Below are positions 10,237 through 62,050 of a stretch of DNA of 64,000 bases, piece after piece; position 1 is the first letter of the stretch; the number at the start of each line of letters is the position of its first letter. The DNA is from Chara braunii. Its lineage: Eukaryota; Plantae; Charophyceae. The DNA lies in assembly GCA_003427395.1 (NCBI GenBank), contig BFEA01000009.1, forward strand, positions 569,804-633,803, written 5' to 3'. A model generated the notes under the pieces. That model had not been told where the DNA came from, did not search any database, and was given only the letters and a program-made list of their open reading frames with translations. The position numbers and the translations under genes were made by a program.

Positions 10237-10491
10237 CTAGGCTACCAGAGTGGCCCGGGGTCACTTGCCCGACCGAGCCAAAAATATAAAAATAAAAATA
10301 AAATATTATTTTTATTTTTAATTTTTTATTTTAATTTTGGCGAAGAATTTCGATGTGACCCTGAGGCAAAAGTTGTTCAGTTTATTTTTATGCATACCAT
10401 AGTTTTTTTTTGGATCTTTTTTTTTTTTTTGCTGGGACCTCCTTGCACGGGCCGGCCACCCGGGACCCGGGCGACCCGGCTGGTAGCCTAG
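10237..10491. mobile_element. MITE with 12-bp TIR and 8-bp TSD (hAT-like), copy 1
   Basis: ctaggctaccag...ctggtagcctag flanked by taataata on both sides; GC-rich subtermini and AT-rich core shared with 17154-17438 and 39779-40138. Confidence 0.9.
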
Positions 10492-12830: not shown

Positions 12831-14116
12831 ATACACACACGTAGTATCCGGTAGTGTGTACATCCACTTTCTAGCGATAGATTCATTCGATTTTATTTTA
12901 TTTATTTATTTATTTTATTTTATTTATCCTATCCGATGGAAGTATCATGAGGTAAGCCCCGAGATTGAAGGCTTACCTGTTCTCTCTTCGTCGTCGCCGT
13001 CGTCACTGTCGTCGGTCTTCGTCGTCAGCCTTCGTCGTCGTCGTCAGCGTCATCGTTGTCGTCAGTCATCACCAGTCGTCGTCAGACGACTTCTCAAAAC
13101 ACCTCACCGCACCCTTCAATCGGTAGGAGCGACGGCGATGTGTACAAAGGGCAGGAACGTAATCAACACGAGCAGATGACTCGTGTTACTAGGCATTCCT
13201 CATTCAAGATCGATAATTACAGTAATCTACCCCGTCATGATGAACCTTAAGAAGGTTACCCGGGCCTTTCGACCCAGGCAAGCTACTCGTTGGATTCATC
13301 AGTGTAGCGCGTGTGCGCCTAGGTAAGAGCTCTTCCTCTCTCTTTTTCTCCTTTCTCTTCTTCTTCTTCTTCTCCTTCTTCTTCTTCATCCTCCTCGCAC
13401 GCCTCCTTCTTCACTCGCGTGCCCGTATCTGTCCTGCGCTCCCCTCTTCCTAGCGGCCACCTTCTTCCCGCTCGTCTTACCTCTACTCCTTCGCGCGTGT
13501 CCACTTGCCTGCTCTCCTTTTCTTTGGGTGCACTCATCTTCTTCGGCGCAACCTCCCCGCGACTCTCTTCCTCTCATTTTCCTCTTTCTCCTCTTCCTCC
13601 TCCTTCTTCTTCTTCTTCTTCCTCTCTACTTCTTCTTCTCCCTCACTGCTTCTACTCCCTCATACCATCTCTGCTATTTTGCGCGCCCCTCTGCGATGCT
13701 CCACCCGCCATCTCTGCTGCTCCGTGCGCACCACCTCCGTACTTGCTCTTTGAGCAACAGCGCCCCCACTCCCGCGCTCGCATGTTTTCTCCTGGCATCC
13801 CCCTCTCGCTTTTCTACTGAGCTTGTCGTCGTGCGCTGCGCTGCCCGTCGAGCCTTCAGTGCAGGCCAAAATTTCGGATGTCGCGTGAATCCGCCTGTTT
13901 ATCAAGGGCTGATTCATTAAAATCGGATCAGTGGAGAGCGGCTTCGGAATCAGAGAGGATCAACAAATAAATAAATAAATAAAAAGAAAAACGAATCTAA
14001 CTAATTTCAAAAAAATAAAAATAAATTAAATAAATAAATAAAAAGAAAAATGAATCTAACTAATTTCAAAAAAATAAAAATAAATTAAAGGAAAGAATCT
14101 AACCACTATCTACTTT

Positions 14117-15441
14117 GTTCTGCCAAGTGTAATCCCCTCGTTTTCAGAGGGCTAACTAACTCTAACTACTTATGAATCTGAGGTCACGGGTTCGAGTCCC
14201 GCCAGCCCTCGGGCGGGGTGAAAACGGGCGGCTGCGGTGCTGCTCCTTATCAAAAAGAGCTAGTTCAAGGTCAAGCGGATTCGATCCTTGAGTTCGGAGT
14301 TTGATGATAAGAACCCGAACCTTCTGAGCTAGCTCCTTATTTGGATAGAAGAGGAGTAGCTCAGATCCATATAGAGTCGTGGGACTTAGTCGAGCCCGTT
14401 TTCTAAGTTTGTGTGTGTGTACACCTACCGATTTGCCTACCTGTTCGAGTGCTTGTCGTCTTGTGTGTGTGTGTGGCCCACAAGGGTACTTGGTCGCCCG
14501 AAAGGCTCGAAGGGCGGGTACTTACCTATAGCCGCGTTATTAAGGGTTGCGGCGGTGAAAACACACAAGTGGCGGGGAAAAAGACCCATAACACTTAGCA
14601 GAAAAATACTCAAGTATCAGGTAGGACGGTACCTTACCAATAGAGGTAGATGTGCCAGGTACTCGGGATTGAGCAGAAAAAGACAAAAGTTGGCATTTTT
14701 AGAGGCCCGGTATCGGTAGATAGGCGGGTACCAGTTCAAGTAGCCTGAGTCTTGGCCCTATGCGGATGGTATCAGAGCTTTCAACGGTGTCTCCTCCTCC
14801 AAAGTGACGAAGGTACCGGTTGCTTGGGTGGCTACGTAGTCAGGGAGTCGCCGCCCAAGACGCAACCTCTTTTCTACATACGGGAGGCTGAAAGGTAGCC
14901 TCAACCTTACTCACGGTATTTGAGTAAGGACAGGTGTACGGACTGCCATTCCCAATTATGGTCGGCAGTAGGTTCCTTTTGGCTGCCCCGGCCGCATGGC
15001 CGAGGTTATATTAATTTTTCAGCCGTCTTTAGATTTTACGGTGGTGCGATCTGCCGACTTTCATATACCGGCCGGTCTTGACGCCCCTGAACTTGTTCTA
15101 ACTCATTTCTGCCTTACCGTCTGATCCTTTAACGGTTTCAGATTGAGGTCGCCAGATCCTGTGCGACCTTTCTTATTTTTTTTTCTTCCAACCCTCTGGC
15201 CCTTGTGGTCGAAGACTTTTAATTTTTATTCACCCCTTCCGGTTGTTGTATGCGTCGTATCACTGCGTATTGTCACCTAGCAACCTCGGCCTCAATGGTC
15301 GAGAAGTTTGCTTCACGGCGCTATGCCAAAAAAATTATCACTTTTTACTCCAGACCGTCTCCGGTACGGTAACCGGTGTCACCACTGTATCGAATGCAAA
15401 ATCATAAGCAAATACCCTGGTAAGGGTGTTTGCTCCGACAG
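14117..15441 (+). repeat. Copy 2 of the ~1.3-kb direct repeat; the element may begin upstream at tgttacta (13184)
   Basis: Colinear with 1-1297 apart from small indels. Confidence 0.9.
14767..14778 (+). promoter_or_regulatory. tRNA-iMet primer-binding-site motif
   Basis: Exact tggtatcagagc; not immediately preceded by an LTR-terminal CA. Confidence 0.55.
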
Positions 15442-17153: not shown

Positions 17154-17438
17154 CTAGACTACCAGCCGGGCCGCCCGGGTCCCGGGTGGCCAGCCCGTGC
17201 AAGGACCAAGGAAGGTCCCAGGAAAAAAAAAAAAAAACACAAATCCAAAAAGTCAAAAAAAAAAAAACTATGTTATGCAGAAAAATAAACTGAACAACTT
17301 TTGCCTCAGGGTCACATCAGAATTCTTAACCAAATTTAAAATAAAAAATAAAATGTAAAAATATTTTTTTAATTTTTATTAATTTTTATTTTTTCGGCCC
17401 GGCCGGGCAAGTGACCCTGGGCCACTCTGGTAGCCTAG
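17154..17438. mobile_element. MITE with 12-bp TIR and 8-bp TSD (hAT-like), copy 2, inverted relative to copy 1
   Basis: gccagcaa|ctagactaccag...ctggtagcctag|gccagcaa. Confidence 0.93.
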
Positions 17439-22610: not shown

Positions 22611-24743
22611 AAACAATGTCGAAGCACAAGGTTCAAGCATAGTGTGACATACGTTATGGCGATTGACGATGATTTTGGCGAACTTGCAGATATGAACAAA
22701 TTTCAGGTGACAACACAAAAGGTATTCCTTTTCACAAATTTGTAGATGTAAACAGTCTTATCACAAATGTATGTTTTCCAAATTCCGAATATATTACAGG
22801 CAGCATTCAGTGGAGACTACCACATGTATTCTTGCGATACCACTTATTTTTCTGGAGTCCATAAAATGACGCCAAACATACATACATTCTCACAGCAAAT
22901 GATTTTCATTCCGCAATTGTCATATGGAAGCAACACTCAACATTCAGTAGAGACAAAACCGTTCATGGCACACGAAGAATTGGCCTTGGCTGCAGAAGAC
23001 GGGACAGGCAGAAGGAGGGTGGTTTCGGGGAGGAGGATACAACAGAGGGGGTGAACCGGAGAAAGGGGCGGTACGGCGTGCCAAAATTTGTGAAAATCGG
23101 TCGGGGAGGGAGGGAAGGGGGGGAGGGGAGGGGTGTTGGGGTAAGGTGGGTTTCCAGACCATGAAGTTGAGTGTAAGAAAAACAAAAGCAGAGAATTTGG
23201 CGACAAAAAAAAATCATTGATATCTTTCACCGACATCTTGGTAAATGAACCAGAGAATCGACTCTTGTGAGCAGGAGTGTAAATAATGGACACAACAGGA
23301 CAAAGATTGCGCCATGAGTAACACAGAAGCACAACCTGGAAACGAACAAAGGCAGCACGACGCTGCCGCGGTCGTAGAGGACACAAGGAGAATAACCCGA
23401 AAAAAAAACGAAGTCAGGAGGGGACTGGGATATTCGCATCGACATCTAAGCGTCTACTAAAATGATACTACACCACGAGGCCGGAATATTCACAACGACA
23501 TCTAAGCGTCTACTTGACCTACGCTTCCACTGCAACTCTCTGACTGATATCGGGCGGTTAAGGAAAGACAATAACCCGAAAACAAACTAAGGCAGCACGC
23601 CGCTGCCGGCGTCCTAAAGAAAAGGTTTCACGAGGCTGCAACATTTACACCTGGAAAACTAAAAAAACAAGAAAGTGACTACAATCCTCTACAATCCTCC
23701 ACCTCATCCGAAGAACACCAGAGCTCGAGCCAACCAACTGCAAGAACAAGTGGGAATAGATTCACAGTTCTGTTTATGACCTCACAAATTAAAAACTAGC
23801 GTATTCTTTTAATAGGGGTATTATTATGAGCCTTGGATTATATCCACCGCCATCCTCAGCCTAATGTTTGGAATGTCGCTTTGGCCTATCGGAAATGGAG
23901 GTGAATGACCGCGTGCCAGAAAAGAAGCGAAGGCGATCATGAAAACACCGCAGCTCGACCCGTTCGACTATTGAGGGACACCACGAACAACCACCTTCGG
24001 CTCCGGTAGATTCACTTTCGTGTGTCGACCAAATTGACGAACTTCCTCATCACAGAGGTATTTCATGAAGTTCGCAAGCACATCGAAAGAAAAACTGTCA
24101 TCGTCTTGTACGAGGGAGTCGTAGTACTCCAACCCTCCTTCGCGGACGCATTAACAGAAAAAAAAGAGTGTGTTAACACTAAAGTTTAATGGGGAACTTT
24201 GTGTATAACATCATATTTTAATCAGTTTATAAATTTGTTATCTTCATGTTCACGTTAATAATCATGAAGGGGGTTAACCTATATCTATAATCAATGATCA
24301 AATCGGATATCATCGTTTGACCCTTTTCTAACTGTTTACAAACAGTTCATCAAATGTTTATTTTCTCTCCCATCTGTTGAAAACCTGTTGATAAACTGTT
24401 GAAATCATATTGAAATCCAGTGTTGGTGGTGATATTGCAAAATAATGCAAAAAACGGTTAGAAAATCGTTTCAACTTTTAATATAGGGATTATGTTGAGA
24501 GTGGGATAAATTGTCTTAAGTGTGTTGTCCGCATTTATATCACAAAAGGTAATTTTTTTTTTTTTTTTTTTTGCTAACCCTTAATAATTTTTTTTTTTGT
24601 CTGTAGATTTAAGTCTTTTTTTGTCTCTCTTTTGTCCTCTCTCTCTCTCTCTGTGTATATATATACATATATATAGTCAAAGAGAGTTGTCCAGTAAACC
24701 GTAGGCAAAGAGAAAGAAAAAAACAACAAACGAGGGGTTGTGA

Positions 24744-24783
24744 CAGACTATTTTCTCGGAGTTTCACCCACTCATCAGGAGGC
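24744..24783 (-). ncRNA. Degenerate hammerhead ribozyme-like core, homologous to 39692-39748
   Basis: Minus strand cctc-CTGATGA-gtggg-tgaaact-ccgag-AAAA-tagtctg. Confidence 0.5.
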
Positions 24784-24962
24784 AGATATATCTTACAAGA
24801 AAAAGACATGACATGTCTTTGAACAAGAAAATGGGAAGTGGTCAGTAGGTGCATAGTAAAACAAAGCCAATCAATATTTGCAAAGGCAAATTCATATGCA
24901 CCTACCGACCACCATTTTGTTTGTTGTGCGATCTTAGGAAAACAACATTTAATTTATATCAG

Positions 24963-25038
<76 letters not shown>

Positions 25039-25335
25039 TTGAAACCCTCATTTTTTGTAAACTTTCGTTTCTGTACATGGAAAACCATGAAGGTTTTTGA
25101 ATTTTCATGAATAATTATCGATATGACTGTAGTCAACAATGCAATTCTATGTATTTTAGGTAACATGACACAAAAAAACGACATAAAAACGCATATACTA
25201 TAAGCAAAAAAAAAAATCCTTCATTAAGATAAGGACACATTTTTTATCAATTTTTACGTTTGGAATCCTTGATTGCGTTTGTCTCTTCTCTCTCTATCTA
25301 TGTATCTATCTATGTATCTATCTATCTATCTATCT

Positions 25336-25389
<54 letters not shown>

Positions 25390-25394
25390 GTGTG

Positions 25395-25428
<34 letters not shown>

Positions 25429-25506
25429 CATATATATAGTCAAAGAGAGTTGTCCGGTAAAACATAGGCATAGAGAGAGAAAAGGATAATAAACGAGGGA
25501 TTATGA

Positions 25507-25545
25507 CAAACTATTTCGTGAAAGTTTCACCGACTCATCCAGAGA
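25507..25545 (-). ncRNA. Degenerate hammerhead ribozyme-like core, third homologue
   Basis: Minus strand ctc-TGGATGA-gtcgg-tgaaact-ttcac-GAAA-tagtttg. Confidence 0.45.
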
Positions 25546-29016: not shown

Positions 29017-29112
29017 AAGGGGGATGGAATGCGAGGATTAAGCCCTCGCGAGGCCCTTCTCAGGCATGCAAATGTTCCGGGTTGCGCCCCCAGCAAGCCT
29101 CGGTACCACCCA
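29017..29112 (+). mobile_element. Polypurine tract (29017-29029) and truncated start of a family A 3' LTR (TG at 29030)
   Basis: aagggggatggaa|tgcgaggattaagccctc; matches the reverse complement of gagggctcaatcctcaca at the 33746 end. Confidence 0.85.
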
Positions 29113-30437
29113 TAAAGCAATGCAGTGCAACCTCAGCCAAAATGCCATGTCAGCATACTCTCATCATCATACATACATCCGCTGTCGCCACAACCTTCCA
29201 GCGGCTGGCTTCTCCACCTAGGCCCCACTACAACATACCAGCATCAAAGTATCCTTACGTCGATATGAAGCATCGTCAGCGCACCGAGTAACAATGTCGT
29301 CGGTGTCAGGTAAGCGGCGATCAGGAAGCAGCTCTGATACCAAATTGCAAGAAATATGAGTGTGAACGATATACAGAAAACCAAGTTGTGAAATCACACA
29401 GATGTCCAGGTAGTCGTGTCCAAGCTGAGAGTACAAATGCACCAAGAAACCATTCATATAGAGCAATACAATGAAGTAATGAGCCAATGTTCAAGCACAT
29501 AGGCCACACCAACACAATATCCAAAGTCGCTCCTCTCTGTCTGGCGCCCAACGCCCAAAATCCAGCCTACTCTACCCGACTATCCTACCTACAACTGTGC
29601 TCACACAACAGACTCAATTCGACTCTCGAAGACAAATGTACAAGACTGTCAACACCATAGCCGACCTCTCTTCATGCACCAGGTACGTATCTCGTCACCC
29701 TCAATCAGACCTTGATTACCCCACACTCGCCTCCTTCCCTAAAGACCGCCAGATCGCCGACTTACCCCCTGGCGCCCAGTAACCCGATTATGGCTGCCTG
29801 CGCCCCGCTGCCCTGCAGCACCCCATTTCACCTCTACTCGCCCCGTCAGCGCCCTTGGCCGCAGCGCAGCATAAAGCAGTAGTGCAGCAACACTTCCGCA
29901 TTGCCTACGCAGGCCAAAATACCTGGCCTGGGCTGCCTTACTTCTTTTATGGAAGTGGCAGCCTCCTGGATGTTGCGTGTGGCCTGGCTGGAAGCTTCCG
30001 GTTGGGCCTCAGTCCTTGCGCCCAGGCCCGAGGCTACAGTTGAGGGCCTGGGCCCTTTACAGTTCGGCACGACCTGAGTCTCCGGACTTTGGCTTTGGTG
30101 CATTTGTGCACGGCCCTGGGGTAGGTGCGTCGACAGTACTGATTTTGCATAAGCCGCTGGCCGCTTCACAATGTATCGGCCCTGCCTTGTGTGTATGTGC
30201 CCAGGTGCAACTGCCAAGGCCTGGGCCAACTATACGACGCAGCTTAGTGAGGCTCACGCGTCCATCAACCAACTGACGTGCTGCATGAGCCTGAATACCC
30301 ATATAGGAAAATGTCGAATTTTGGCCTCTGATGAATATTCAGGCCCGCCTTCACTTAGGGCGGGCACTCAGCTCGCTGGGGGCCTCTGCCTAGAACATGT
30401 GATGTCTGATAGGGCCCCGTGAGGGCTCTTTCCTCGT
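29113..30437 (-). mobile_element. Family A 5' LTR (29346-~30437) with Met-PBS (29331-29342) and a short leader remnant
   Basis: Minus strand ...ttcttgCA-att-TGGTATCAGAGC; colinear with the solo LTR at 32696-33746. Confidence 0.88.
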
Positions 30438-39376: not shown

Positions 39377-39612
<236 letters not shown>

Positions 39613-39691
39613 AAAAGTCGACCACCGAAAGGGTGTCGCTAACTCCGGGCGATGTGGTGAGTCCTTATCCATCAGTCAAATGAATCCTGGG

Positions 39692-39748
39692 CAGACTGTC
39701 GGGGTTCAACCTCCTAATGAGTCGGTGAAAGTCTGATGAAATAGTCTG
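39692..39748 (+). ncRNA. Type III hammerhead ribozyme-like motif (degenerate core)
   Basis: cagact-GTC / stem I gggg-ttcaa-cctc / CTaATGA / stem II gtcgg-tgaaagt-ctgat / GAAA / tagtctg pairing back to cagactg. Confidence 0.72.
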
Positions 39749-39778
39749 GCAAAGTCATGTTTTTTTTTTAGTGTATAG

Positions 39779-40138
39779 CTCGGCTACCAGCCGGGCCGCC
39801 CGGGTCACCCTATTTTCCCGGGCGGCCCGATCGTGCAAGGACAAGGGAAGGACCTAGCAAAAAAAAAAAAAAAATCGATAAATCCACAAAAAAAACTATG
39901 TCATGCAGAAAATTAAACTGAACAAAAATCGATAAAATCCAAAAAAAAAACTCGATAGAATCCAAAAAAAAAACTGTCTTTTTAAAAATTAAACTGAATA
40001 ACGTTTGCCTCAGGGTCACATCGAAATTTTGTACAAAATTAAAAAAAATAATAATAATAATAATAATTATTAATTTTTATTTTTATCTTGTTTTTCGCCC
40101 GGCCGGGCAAGTAGTCTCGGGCCACTCTGGTAGCCTAG
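39779..40138. mobile_element. MITE with 12-bp TIR and 8-bp TSD (hAT-like), copy 3
   Basis: gtgtatag|ctcggctaccag...ctggtagcctag|gtgtatag. Confidence 0.93.
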
Positions 40139-40854
40139 GTGTATAGTGAATATGACAACACACAAACAGTCTCTCACGCACGCGGGGCAAATGCAAGTTT
40201 TTTTTTTTTTTTTTTTTTTTGATTGATTGATTTATTTATTTATTGATTGATTGATTGATTGATTGGTAGCCCCCGCCAGCAGGGAAACGTTCGAATGTTC
40301 GAATGCTGGTGGGGGCTGCCATTCGCGCTTGGTTAGACTTCGTGAATGGCACCCCCTCTCTTGATGATCGATCCTAGCCACCAAATTCAATCTACGAAAT
40401 TCAACGGCGCAGATCAACGAAGCCACTGACATGTTAGAGGCCCTAAGTTCTCCACCAACTCCGGCGTGCATTGATATAACATTTCCAGAAAGTAAGAGAC
40501 AATCTAGGTAATTTTCGTTGTCGTAGTCTCGTCCGTCAATCGTCATGATCCGACGTACAAAGTGGAGCTTTGTTACCCCCCCGAGGTTAGGAGCGGTAAT
40601 CGCAGTGCAACCGTTCGTTGCGCGCCGACGCCAGGCACGACGGTCCGTTGCGCTCCGAGGCACAATTCCGAACGCTCTCGAAAACCCGTTGTGGCGGTTC
40701 GTTGCACGCCAAGGTCAACACTGGAAACCGACAAAATATGGTTTGGCAGACATTGTGACATTTTGCAAATATCAACGGAGGTGGATAGCGAACGTCCGCA
40801 ATCGCTCCATTTTGAACCAACGCCGCGCTTGCGAACGGAATCGCATCCATTCTC

Positions 40855-42270
40855 ACGCTCGCCATCGCCATAGCCATCGATGCACTTAGCTCATCACCAT
40901 CGCTGTGCACAACTATATTCTCCATCGCAGCGCTGGTAATCGCTATCGTTATTGCTACCATCGCAGCTCTCGCCATCGCTATCGCTACCATCGCAGCGCT
41001 GGCCATCGTTATCTATTCCATTGTCGCGCCATCTCTTTCCATCCCTATCCATGCCATCGCAGCGAGGGCCATCGCTATCACTTCCATCGCAGAGCTGGGC
41101 CATCTCCTGCGCCATCTTTCTCCATCACGGACTCTCTCCATCGCTGCGCGATCTCTCTCCATCACTCCTGCGCGATCTCTTCTCCGTCGCTTCGCAGTCT
41201 TTCTCCATCTCTCTCCATTGCTCTTGCGTGATATCTCTCCATCGCTGCTCGTTCCCTATCCATCTCAGCCCCATCTTTCTCCATCGCGGACTCTCTCCAT
41301 CGTTGCGCCATCTCTCTCCATCACTCCTGTTCGATCTCGTCTCCATCGTTGAGGGATTTCGCTCCATCGCTGCGCATTCCCTCTCCATCGTTGCGTGATC
41401 ACTCTTCATCGCTGCTCGATCTCTCTCCATTGCTGCACCATCTCTTTCCATCGCTGTGTGATCTCTCTCCATCACTGCGCGATATCTCACCATGACTTCA
41501 TCTTTCTCCATCGCGGACTCTCTCCATCGCTCCTACGCGATCTCTCCATCTCCATTGTATAATCGTTCTACTCCTCCATCGGTGAAGTCGCCCATCATTG
41601 CGAAATCGCACGAAACAAGCGCCAGGTATGCGTAATGAACGTTTAACACGACGGATATAACTTTGATTAAGCTAATTTTGAACTGATCTCGGATGCATTA
41701 TATCTAAAACATTAGTTAGCCATTAAATGATGTTGTCTAGGTCAATAGTGAGATATGCGGCACTCCTGCGCCATCTATCTTCATCGTTGCGCCATCACTA
41801 ACCATCGCTTCACCAGATCTCTCCGTCGGCTTGCCATCGCTGAGCATCGTTCGCCATCGTTAACCATCGCTGCACCAGATATCTGCATTTGTGCGCCTTC
41901 GCTAACCATCGTTGTGCCCGCTCTCTCGATTGGAGCGCCATCTTTCTCCATCGGTGCGCCATCTCTCTCCATCGGTGCGTAATCTCTCTCCATCGTTTCG
42001 CGATCTCTCTCCATCGTCGTGCCATCTTTGTGCATCTATCTCCATCGTTGCGCCATCGTTCTCCATTTGTTTCCATCTGTCTCTATCTGTCTCCATCTTT
42101 GCGCCATCACTGACCAATCGACCCATTGTATTGTCGTTGTAGTCCGTCATCGGTGTAGCCGCCCATCATAGTCGAATCGTACGAAACAAGCTCAATGCAT
42201 TTAACATGATGTATTAAGCTAATTTTGAATTGATCCCTGATGCATTATATCTAAATAAACATAAGTTAGA
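40855..42270. repeat. Two blocks of ~22-24-bp (tctctccatcgctgcgcgatc-like) minisatellite, each followed by a shared ~120-170-bp spacer
   Basis: ccatcg motif repeated dozens of times; cgcccatcat...cgaaacaagc...attaagctaattttgaa.tgatc recurs near 41590 and 42160. Confidence 0.88.
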
Positions 42271-45609: not shown

Positions 45610-45853
45610 CTATGTTACCAGTTGTCCGATGGCAGGACGTCCTGGGCGGACAGTCGGGGGGGTCCCGGACGTCCGGGCCCGGACAACTCAATTTTTAGCA
45701 ATTAAATGCAAGAAAAAAATAAAAAATAATTGGGGGTGCCTTTAATTTAATTTTTTATTTTAAAATTGACAACGATTTTTGATATCATCTCGAGGCAAAA
45801 GTTGTGCAGTTTATGTTTCTGCATAACATAGTGTTTTTTTCAGATTTTTTGGA

Positions 45854-45891
<38 letters not shown>

Positions 45892-56164: not shown

Positions 56165-57960
56165 ATGGTAAGCATTCCAACCACCTTTCCATTCTATACT
56201 AACCACACTCATCTCGAGGCATGGCTCGAAGCAGTGGAAGCGTAGGGCTATGAAGCGGCTGACCTACCTCGACTCATCACCTTGCCCGTAAGAAATACTG
56301 TGCACGATTGGTTTAAACGCCACCAATAGGTAGATTGGGATACATTTAAAAAAGTCTTTTTGGCAAGATTGGACGAAGTAATTGAGGACAATGCATGGTT
56401 TATACTGAAAACACACCCTCAAGAGCTTGGAGAGCTCTTGCCAAAACTTTGTGGACAAATTTCAAATAGTTTTGGATAAGTTTGGACGGGAAGAAAATGT
56501 TGTTCGAGACTGGTTCATAGATCATCTTCGCAACCCGGTTTTAAAGGCAAAACGGAATAAGAAAGTCCTTCCCAAAACGGAGATCGTAGGTCCGATCAAT
56601 TGGGCGATTTTACCAGCACCACGATCCTGAAAACCCAAGTGGACCAGCACCGAGTCATGTCTCTCATGCTCCCTCCACCGTCGTCTCTCCTCCCTCCTTT
56701 CCTCCTCCTTCCAAGATGACCCCCGTGACCATCGTATTACTGCAATCACCTGACGCCGGTATCCATCACTAATCATCATCTGACTCACATGATTCATACA
56801 GCTACCTTCTGACAAGTGGGATGGATGAACCATCTGATCTAGAGTCAGACGTCGAAATGGAATGATTGAAGCAAGTTTTGGGGGACCTAATGAGCACGCA
56901 CGCCAAAGTACCGCTCGCCACTCCATCTCCTCCTTCGTACCCTTTGCTACATGCCCCTCCTTTTCTAACATCAGTTGTTCCCTCTATAGCTCACTAGACT
57001 ATTCGGCAACAAGGAAGAGTAGAATGCTACAAATGTAAGCAACTCGAACACTTTACCCGAGACTGCCCTCTTCCCAAGAGGAATCAACCTCCTCCTGCAG
57101 CTGCGCCTGTGGCCACTAATCAGGGACAAGTAGGTGTCCTGCTCGAAGGAATAGGTGAGGCAGGGAATAGTTCCCCTTCCCCACTTCCTCCCACGCAATC
57201 GGATATGATTGCGTCGACGTATGGACCTTCATTTGAAGTTGGAGTTGTCGTCGATCCCAACGAGTACCTCTTGTTGACAGGCCTAATTGGAGTCATTCGG
57301 CCCGAAAAAGATGAACTTGAATGAGTGGAATGCGAATCGGAACCCGGTCCTCAGTTTCGGGCGGGAGAAATCGATGTCTTGCAAACACTAAAAAAATTAG
57401 ATATCCGAGTTTCTGTCCCCTTCGGCCACCTGCTAACCATATATGAGGCTGCAAATAACAAGCTCCTCCAGCAATGTTAAAAGAATCAGAAGAGATTTAC
57501 CTACCATCGTGTCCAAGAGATGTTAAAGAAGAAGAAGGAGATGGCGGAACTTGTACCTCCGCCGCCCGATCCCACAACCGTCGTCAAAAAATCAGGAGAG
57601 TCTGAGGCCACCCGAATGACGACAATCTCATACGTAGAGAAAACTCACTTTATCCGCATCTGACTAATTCTATGAAAAAACGCAGAAGGTGATTGCGAGG
57701 TATGGGGGAAGTCGCTCAATGCGTTAGTAGATACTAGGTCATCCGCCGTAGTACTTTTGGTTGACACAGTTCGAAAGGCCGGATAATTAAACTTCATTTT
57801 TCCCTTGTCGTGAAATGATAGCTATGTCTTGGCAGATGAGGAAACCATGCACAACGTCGGGATGATTAAGAATATTGCCATCAAGATTGGGTGAGTGCAC
57901 GCGTTAGTCAATGCATTAGTAATTGACGTACAATCGTGTTGGATGCTGCTGGGATTATGT
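56165..57960 (+). pseudogene. gag: Ty3/Gypsy gag-protease pseudogene
   Basis: MVSIP...LEAWLE...DWDTFKKSF capsid-like segment; CYKCKQLEHFTRDC zinc knuckle at 57025-57066; ALVDTRSS (decayed DTG) at 57721-57744; multiple stops. Confidence 0.88.
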
Positions 57961-60559: not shown

Positions 60560-62050
60560 ACCTATGACGTGCACTCGTCGCATTTGTCCCCTGCATTGAC
60601 ACTCCCTTCAGCAGATGGACTCAGATCTCGAAGTGCAACTTTAGCATTAAGTCGAACATTGGAAGGAATCACAAGTTTAGTCGTGAACGGCTTTGTATCT
60701 TTAGTCGATCTCTCCCAACCAAAAGCGATCGAGTCGGAATGCTGCCATTGTGTCTGGTCAATTATTTTTCGTTTTTCTTACCATGCGTTATCGTACAGTT
60801 CTTGGAGCGACTTTGCTCTCTCAATCAGCACCCTGTATTCCACTAGCATTATAGTTCTGCGAATATTTTTCACCAACCACCTGAGAAAGAGCTTTGCCCA
60901 CCCAGATAGGCACACCGCTGGACAGATCGTCGTCGGAGGGGTGAAGGATAAGAAAAGTACCTATGTCAATATACACGAGGGGGTCGAAACAGATCTTCGG
61001 GCGATCTTTTCTTCGTCCAACAAACAGGGGTTCCCTGTCGTTGCTCAACTTTGTCCTCCTTCACGCTCTCAAATAAAACAATTCATGGAATCCGACCTAT
61101 TTTTGTAAAATATTTCTATTGTTTGGTACTGCAAGCACCATTTTGATGTGTTTCGATTATTTCAAACAAGAACAACCGTAGTCCTGACCAAAAACTTTCC
61201 AGAGGTTGTGAGGACAACCCGTTGGTGATGATGTCGTCGCCATGTTTGATAACCTCCTCCTAGTAATACAAAACTCTTTCTCTCCTACTCACCTCATGGT
61301 CGTTGTAAGTGCACCACGTTGACCGTCTGCTCTCCGGCAACTTGCAAAATCGAATAACACAATTTTTGTCATTATAATAGTCATTTCGAGGAAGGGGTTG
61401 CATAGGAGGCGGGTCAAATGACCACGAAGGACATGCGTAGCTTTCATCGGGGTTTTGATTGAACGAATAACTCAGACCTTCCTCAGACAACCTGTTATCA
61501 TCATCTAAAAACTCCTTGTACAACATGCCTGGATTATCTCTAACCATGAAAAATTTATGCAAGTGCGGTTTCAAAATATCAGTAATGTTCGACACAATGC
61601 ATAAGTCTACTATACTTATCCAATCTGCCAGTGTATCGAGAAAACTACATTTGAGAGGTTTTTTGTGGGATTGCTCTATTAGCTCGCAGAACTCGTCCAT
61701 AGTATAAGCGTCTATGTCTTTCAATTTTTTCGAGAAGACGCTGAAAGTAACATCAACGTCTGTATGGGTATGTCCCACCAGCATGAAACCTATTTCTACC
61801 TCTTGGAAACTCTGAACTTAACCAAGAATGCAACTAGCGCACCTATGTACTTGTTCTTGTTTTCCCGCCAACAATTATCTGCTTGAATGTGCAAAAACGA
61901 TGGCAGTGGCGTCCCGCTCGCTTGAATTTCGACGAGGGTTCTCATAAGATAAGTAGTGATTGTGTTCGAATCGTGTTGAAATACGAAAATCTCGTGTAGA
62001 CATAAATACAAGGGTCTCTACCGTGTGCAATGACACATGTCAGATTCGTG
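60560..62050 (-). pseudogene. DUF7869-type (Sola-like) DDE transposase pseudogene, 5'-interrupted
   Basis: CVIAHG...HDSN...LHIQADNCWRENKNKY...FMLVGHTHTDVD motifs in order, broken by frameshifts and stops. Confidence 0.8.

Follow-up and report, generated by a model that had tools for sequence, protein, structure and literature searches.

Among eukaryotic retroelements, hammerheads are characteristic of Penelope-like elements and of retrozymes. In the streptophyte alga Chara braunii, Craig et al. (2021) described a canonical 3' hammerhead in the Penelope-like element Chlamys-2 as well as PLE-X types with hammerheads, and reported that the C. braunii elements reach very high copy numbers, are often 5' truncated and form partial tandems (PMC8557442). 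According to the same study, many Chlamys elements insert at (CA)n or (C)n, and the function of hammerheads in Penelope-like elements is unclear (PMC8557442). Plant LTR retrozymes, which measure 600-1000 nt, consist of two hammerhead-containing LTRs of 300-400 bp and a non-coding centre of 300-600 bp; they also possess a tRNA-Met primer-binding site, a polypurine tract, a 4-bp target duplication and a unit-length circular RNA (PMC4918200). Animal non-LTR retrozymes, in which type I hammerheads recur in regular tandem repeats (150-400 bp), produce abundant circular RNAs, and it has been argued that they derive, as non-autonomous elements, from Penelope-like pseudo-LTRs (PMC7229834; 10.64898/2026.07.22.740005).

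Here we report on a type III hammerhead motif in a stretch of C. braunii DNA of 64,000 nt (hereafter "the window", i.e., the whole stretch analyzed). Our preferred reading, to which we assign a probability of roughly 0.7, is that this motif represents the ribozyme carried by a dead copy (designated c1) of a short, non-coding and abundant retroelement family of C. braunii, i.e., a Penelope-type tail or a non-autonomous derivative. This family shares with Chlamys-2_cBra and the PLE-X elements the host, the hammerhead, a very high copy number and 5' truncation, as well as a preference for (CA)n sites; joints between its copies may reflect similar partial tandems or inversions. Conversely, c1 contains no ORF and comprises only ~178 nt, and may represent either a truncated tail of these elements or a non-autonomous family of its own; short hammerhead-only elements are absent from the main text of Craig et al. 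2021 (PMC8557442). The first-pass annotation of this DNA had put the motif forward as a candidate for an undescribed system, a suggestion that does not hold, as hammerhead-bearing Penelope-like elements of C. braunii have already been published (PMC8557442). Since such retroelements are known in Chara, c1 itself is an ordinary, MITE-interrupted relic.

Anatomy of the locus and its hammerhead

The locus contains the following features (coordinates are those of the window).

39379-39613, no strand: compound (TC)n/(CA)n microsatellite (Tandem Repeats Finder), the presumed insertion target
39615-39778, plus strand: main part of copy c1, ending at the MITE and made up of ~78 nt ahead of the ribozyme, the hammerhead itself and the first part of the tail
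39619-39639, plus strand: GAAA-capped hairpin, a predicted fold specific to copy c1
39692-39748, plus strand: type III hammerhead fold (Rfam RF00008 and pair list)
39692-39699 with 39741-39748, plus strand: stem III, 8 pairs, end open
39698-39700, plus strand: cleavage triplet GUC, predicted cut after C39700
39701-39704 with 39710-39713, plus strand: stem I, 4 pairs, loop UUCAA
39714-39720, plus strand: core CUAAUGA, with A instead of G5 at 39716
39721-39725 with 39733-39737, plus strand: stem II, 5 pairs, loop UGAAAGU
39738-39741, plus strand: GAAA, intact, as is GUC
39771-39778, no strand: left target-site duplication of the MITE, GTGTATAG (8 bp)
39779-40138, no strand: MITE of 360 bp in the element tail, with terminal inverted repeats CTCGGCTACCAG and CTAGGCTACCAG (11/12)
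40139-40146, no strand: right target-site duplication of the MITE, GTGTATAG
40147-40160, plus strand: end of the element tail, TGAATATGACAAC.., with a CA-rich remnant behind it that extends to about 40172

The first-pass annotation had placed a type III hammerhead at this site and had proposed a search with the Hammerhead_3 model of Rfam (RF00008). This search aligned the full model (positions 1-54) to 39693-39747 of the plus strand with 33.3 bits, i.e., under the gathering score of 48.5, and with E values of 2.5e-5 (for a searched stretch of 601 nt) and 0.0026 (for the whole 64-kb window). A second Hammerhead_3 match was not found in the 64-kb window, even at E values up to 10. Stems I and II of the copy at 39692-39748 are capped by loops while stem III is open, as in type III hammerheads, and all 17 stem pairs are standard (four of them G-U), so that the full-length match and the pairing both bear out the annotated fold. 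The cut that had been expected after C39700 is likewise in keeping with the GUC triplet found immediately before the predicted cleavage position. The invariant core CUGAUGA is present in the family majority and is replaced by CUAAUGA in c1. Substitution of G5 abolishes hammerhead cleavage, as established by hammerhead mutagenesis. As its G5 is replaced by A, c1 is almost certainly inactive as a ribozyme, in agreement with the annotation, which had called the copy probably inactive.

We also assessed the predicted stability of the element. The hammerhead fold of c1 has a predicted free energy of -13.2 kcal/mol, as compared to -16.3 kcal/mol for the minimum free energy structure, which represents a different fold. 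The fold of the whole element (39615-39765) was not more stable than those of dinucleotide-preserving shuffles (z = -0.4), and the fold of the MITE-excised element yielded z = -1.0 against simple shuffles. As the element folds are not more stable than shuffled sequences, a rod-like structure is unsupported.

At the 5' side, the last (CA)n array of the microsatellite (39576-39613) abuts the end of c1; the hammerhead stretch is flanked by the microsatellite on one side and by a T-run on the other. Contigs and reads align to c1 from 39631 to 39766-39770, and the family consensus before 39631 still agrees with AAAGTCGACCAC at 39615-39626, beyond which c1 meets the (CA)n. The GAAA-capped hairpin that had been described upstream of the hammerhead does fold in c1, but it is not a family feature, as other family copies show TTTTCTCAG where c1 has CGAAA.

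At the 3' side, one DNA contig links the end of a copy to the next copy via AAGTGTATAACAAATATGACACT, which equals 39769-39778 joined to 40147-40159; this joint confirms 40147-40160 as family tail. With the MITE excised, the tail folds into a terminal hairpin of 9 pairs. Overall, c1 has a length of ~178 nt (39615-39778 plus 40147-40160) and is made up of ~78 nt of upstream region, the 57-nt hammerhead and a tail of ~45 nt with the small terminal hairpin. The element ends in ..ATATGACAC and has neither a poly(A) nor a simple-repeat tail of its own. Both neighbors between which the motif had been annotated, i.e., the microsatellite (39379-39613) and the MITE (39779-40138), are real, and their nesting indicates an order of events in which the microsatellite was followed by insertion of the element and then by point decay and insertion of the MITE. 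The locus thereby provides a worked example of dating by nesting, with a microsatellite, a retroelement, a MITE and C>T decay on top.

The MITE belongs to a family whose members measure ~360 bp, have terminal inverted repeats of 12 bp and produce a target duplication of 8 bp (hAT-like size). Further MITE copies are located in the window at 10237-10491 (minus strand), 17159-17438 (plus strand) and 45709-45872 (minus strand). The left 90 nt of the MITE are highly repeated in the genome and contain an internal A16 run, which is extended as poly(A) by reads.

A 21-nt pattern representing the core region occurs three times in the window, as compared to 0 expected occurrences. The two occurrences outside c1 belong to partial copies.

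24683-24782, minus strand: copy c2, 3' part of the hammerhead only (CUGAUGA, stem II, GAAA and the 3' strand of stem III)
25446-25545, minus strand: copy c3, the same 3'-only form, more decayed (CTGGATGAG)

The homologue at 24772-24778 that had been said to retain CTGATGA is c2, which indeed carries this motif at 24778-24772 of the minus strand, in a copy that represents the 3' part only. The motif match in c3 is located at 25525-25545 (minus strand), and c3 lies 763 bp from c2. Starting some 8-9 nt past the cut-site position, within TA-rich DNA, c2 and c3 are devoid of the cleavage triplet and of the 5' halves of stems I and III. The flanks of c2 are TA-rich and its tail differs from that of c1; the tail type of c2 and c3 reads GTCACA.CCCCTCGTTTGTTG.. 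The Rfam hammerhead model did not match c2 or c3 even at E values up to 10 (for c2, also in a scan of 181 nt). When the window was searched by blastn with the element, with its tail and with c2 and the MITE, no further c1-type copy was detected, and the ORF that spans c2 yielded no relatives at the protein level. Copies c2 and c3 are part of a 763-bp tandemly duplicated unit (24683-25545, minus strand), in which each unit contains a truncated hammerhead fragment within TA-rich DNA, beside another repeat that has inverted arms of 16 bp separated by a spacer of 39 nt.

Family size, transcription and decay

Reads and contigs of the same organism were aligned to positions 39611-39900 (290 nt) at a likeness of at least 80%; the runs used were two raw oligo-dT RNA-seq runs (X21 and X22), one DNA run (X1) and one further run. 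In X1, 7,769 DNA contigs match this 290-nt stretch, and the two oligo-dT RNA runs contribute 5,237 reads (1,468 and 3,769). The family is highly repeated and transcribed. Conversely, a further 43 kb of C. braunii DNA (L003 and L004) contained no copies of the element or of the MITE, and this lack of copies points to a patchy distribution of the family.

Relative to the family majority, c1 shows the following changes within the ribozyme.

39716, plus strand: core G5>A, where the family majority has G
39734, 39737 and 39742, plus strand: three C>T changes, with C being the majority letter in all four runs

At position 39716, G was found in 257/308 and 700/713 reads of X21 and in 746/843 and 1627/1706 reads of X22, i.e., in 83-98% of RNA reads, as well as in 363,283 of 371,500 of the contig depth in X1 (98% of DNA depth). 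C accounted for 83-84% of the X1 contig depth at 39734 and 39737 and for 96% at 39742. The changes at 39734 and 39737 convert G-C pairs of stem II, including G10.1-C11.1, to G-U, and the change at 39742 converts C15.2-G16.2 of stem III to U-G. The majority letters G39716, C39734, C39737 and C39742 yield the core CUGAUGA, an all-Watson-Crick stem II with five pairs, and C15.2-G16.2. As these letters restore a canonical core and stems, c1 has decayed by C>T and G>A changes. Two of the four decay sites are in CpG and two in CHG context, which is consistent with deamination of methylated cytosines. The previous proposal, according to which all departures from an ideal hammerhead are C>T or G>A transitions, is thus correct for the ribozyme (39716, 39734, 39737 and 39742). 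In the rest of the element, two transversions and two additional transitions also set c1 apart from the majority.

The 5' ends of copies vary. Ends were found directly after (CA)n at 39615 (c1), 39684 and 39706, and after (TA)n at about 39710. Such varying 5' ends, combined with a constant sense strand, bear the signature of target-primed reverse transcription into microsatellites with 5' truncation, the hammerhead being in the RNA sense. Summed contig depth also changes along the element, from about 123,000-148,000 over 39661-39700 up to ~394,000 at 39711-39720, with steps at the cut site of 148,000 (39691-39700), 282,000 (39701-39710) and 394,000 (39711-39720). This 2.7-fold rise in DNA depth within ~20 nt past the cut site is partly a clipping artefact; reads clipped at 39702 still have CAGACTGTTGA upstream. 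With that part of the step being artefactual, the rise is consistent with many copies that approximate the 3' self-cleavage product.

Among the RNA reads, the c2/c3-type tail is commoner, as 538 and 1,174 reads in the two runs carry on into such a tail after 39745. First mates over the core lie on the minus strand at a ratio of about 2:1, which agrees with hammerhead-sense RNA if the library follows the usual stranded protocol. An excess of RNA ends at 39700/39701 was not observed in the two oligo-dT runs, fragmented poly(A)+ libraries being a weak test of such ends.

Head-to-tail joints (leading back by 53-121 nt) and two opposite-strand joints between copies were each found in one or two DNA contigs, and could equally represent independent insertions stacked together. 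Among the 5,237 RNA reads (oligo-dT libraries, aligned to a stretch without the tail beyond the MITE), none contained a back-joint, although libraries of this type are poorly suited to detecting circles. As back-joints are confined to DNA contigs, they would represent genomic tandems. The first-pass annotation had considered the motif a relic of a ribozyme-driven retroelement or of a circular-RNA family; the ribozyme-bearing repeat family is substantiated by these data, while the circular RNA finds no support in the 5,237 reads.

Origin of the family and alternative explanations

Microsatellite insertion with variable 5' truncation, a Penelope-like feature, is present in the family. From this insertion style and from the literature, compared by description and not by sequence identity, we infer a link to Penelope-like elements. 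No reverse transcriptase or GIY-YIG ORF was found in the window, where the search for a Penelope-like ORF yielded only a DUF7869 transposase-like ORF and a zinc-knuckle ORF; as it lacks a Penelope-like ORF, c1 would at best be a truncated tail or a non-autonomous relative. We propose that the family represents the 3' tail (part of the pseudo-LTR) of hammerhead-bearing Chlamys or PLE-X elements, or a non-autonomous derivative that would be copied by the reverse transcriptase of these elements. Where a copy is intact, its hammerhead would cleave the transcript after GUC and thereby trim upstream read-through or tandem RNA. The piece of ~90 nt past the cut, which comprises the ribozyme body and the tail, may then represent the minimal unit that is copied back, with target-primed reverse transcription placing it into microsatellite DNA. 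In the case of c1, the MITE later split the copy, and four C>T or G>A changes hit the ribozyme.

We hypothesized further, and more tentatively, that c1-type and c2/c3-type repeats could be dedicated non-autonomous type III hammerhead elements of ~100-200 nt, copied in trans by a Chlamys-type reverse transcriptase, with the 5' end of the template set by self-cleavage; we rate this idea at somewhat below even odds. If correct, these elements would be a streptophyte counterpart of the animal Penelope-derived retrozymes and a bridge to the type III retrozymes of plants. Short dedicated copies with 5' ends set by self-cleavage would help to explain the role of hammerheads in Penelope-like elements, and animal and plant retrozymes would be connected. 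Irrespective of this idea, the family shows that a canonical type III hammerhead is carried, in a streptophyte alga, by a retroelement that is extremely abundant and targets microsatellites, in a Penelope-like style that is unlike the LTR style of flowering plants.

The hammerhead could alternatively be carried by a SINE-like parasite of a microsatellite-specific LINE, or its carrier could depend on some other non-Penelope source of reverse transcriptase. LINE lineages that target (AC)n or (TA)n repeats are known, and 5' truncation likewise occurs in some LINE lineages. The combination of 5' truncation and microsatellite flanks would suit any target-primed retroelement, and there is no Penelope-like ORF near c1. 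However, the end of the element in ..ATATGACAC without a poly(A) or simple-repeat tail argues against a LINE parasite, as does the lack of a tRNA-, 5S- or 7SL-like head in the Rfam and tRNA/SINE-head searches. In addition, it is the Chlamys elements of C. braunii that are documented to combine hammerheads with (CA)n targeting (PMC8557442). Overall, we consider a LINE-dependent origin unlikely.

A relic of a plant-type LTR retrozyme that spreads via circular RNA is far less probable still. The Chara family and the plant LTR retrozymes do have a type III hammerhead in common, and both are non-coding, transcribed and found in the green lineage. The Chara element, on the other hand, has neither an LTR pair nor a second hammerhead nor a primer site, and it is much shorter. 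Specifically, the Hammerhead_3 match is the only one in 64 kb (E values up to 10), direct repeats of 300-400 bp are not found around the hammerhead, the flanks consist of (CA)n and the CA-rich remnant rather than of a 4-bp duplication, and no tRNA-Met primer site lies beside the element on its own strand. The ~178 nt of the element are too short for the unit of such a retrozyme, and fold-back reads amount to 0/5,237 in RNA, back-joints being limited to DNA contigs. We therefore rejected the LTR retrozyme as the source of c1.

The remaining explanation, i.e., that the motif resembles a hammerhead by chance or that the host has domesticated a regulatory ribozyme here, has next to no probability: while the score of 33.3 bits is below the gathering score of 48.5 and the lowest-energy fold of c1 is not the hammerhead, chance is refuted by the canonical letters that thousands of relatives among the family reads and contigs have where c1 deviates, and by the three occurrences of the core pattern in the window against 0 expected, and a conserved host function is opposed by the dead core (G5>A) and the later insertion of the MITE.

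The Chara family resembles the animal retrozymes in consisting of short non-coding hammerhead elements that probably depend on a Penelope-like reverse transcriptase and that occur as genomic head-to-tail copies. It differs from them in that its hammerhead is type III rather than type I, its copies lie scattered among microsatellites and circles were not observed; the type III topology and the single dispersed copy rule out an animal-type retrozyme at this locus.

An exact-pattern scan of JGI metagenome contigs with the core and stem II yielded two near-identical matches, both on phage contigs. This marine phage hammerhead (L001, 8190-8244, minus strand; L002, 3440-3494, plus strand) is intergenic, of type III and scores 53.6 bits; the contigs encode Mu Gam-like, replication O-like, DnaC-like and RusA-like proteins and a DNA methyltransferase. 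Stem II and its loop match those of the Chara majority at every position (39731 being read as C, the letter found in c2 and c3), whereas stems I and III and all flanks differ from the Chara family. As their hammerhead is bona fide but unrelated, the phage contigs were rejected as homologues, and their match represents a recurrent motif without common ancestry of the elements.

Other features of the window

The window contains several further repeats and gene-like sequences. A eukaryotic 18S rRNA fragment of 181 nt (13159-13339, minus strand; 82.6 bits) is internally deleted, lies among simple repeats and is probably an rDNA pseudogene fragment. A near-perfect inverted repeat of 99 nt at 62129-62337 matches MIR395 on both strands with 42 and 41 bits (gathering score 56), a foldback or MITE hairpin being likelier here than a miRNA gene. 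Positions 1-1297 and 14117-15441 form a segmental duplication with 87-95% identity, the two parts being 14.1 kb apart, and assembly gaps (N runs) are located at about 15514 and about 25757.

The DUF7869 transposase-like ORF (61263-61817, minus strand) is 46% identical to C. braunii CBR_g40315; among 5.8 billion proteins, its only relatives are two C. braunii proteins. The zinc-knuckle ORF is gag-like and located at 56998-57321 (plus strand). Exact tRNA-Met primer-binding-site motifs were found at 14767-14778 (plus strand) and 29331-29342 (minus strand), and suggest the presence of LTR retrotransposons. A dispersed repeat of 1.3 kb (29096-30356) is 85% identical to the C. braunii contig BFEA01000525.1 (L003, 2328-3616). 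Arrays of a 21-nt unit (..CTCTCCATCGCTGCGC..) occupy 41224-42077 in two blocks that are about 460 bp apart.
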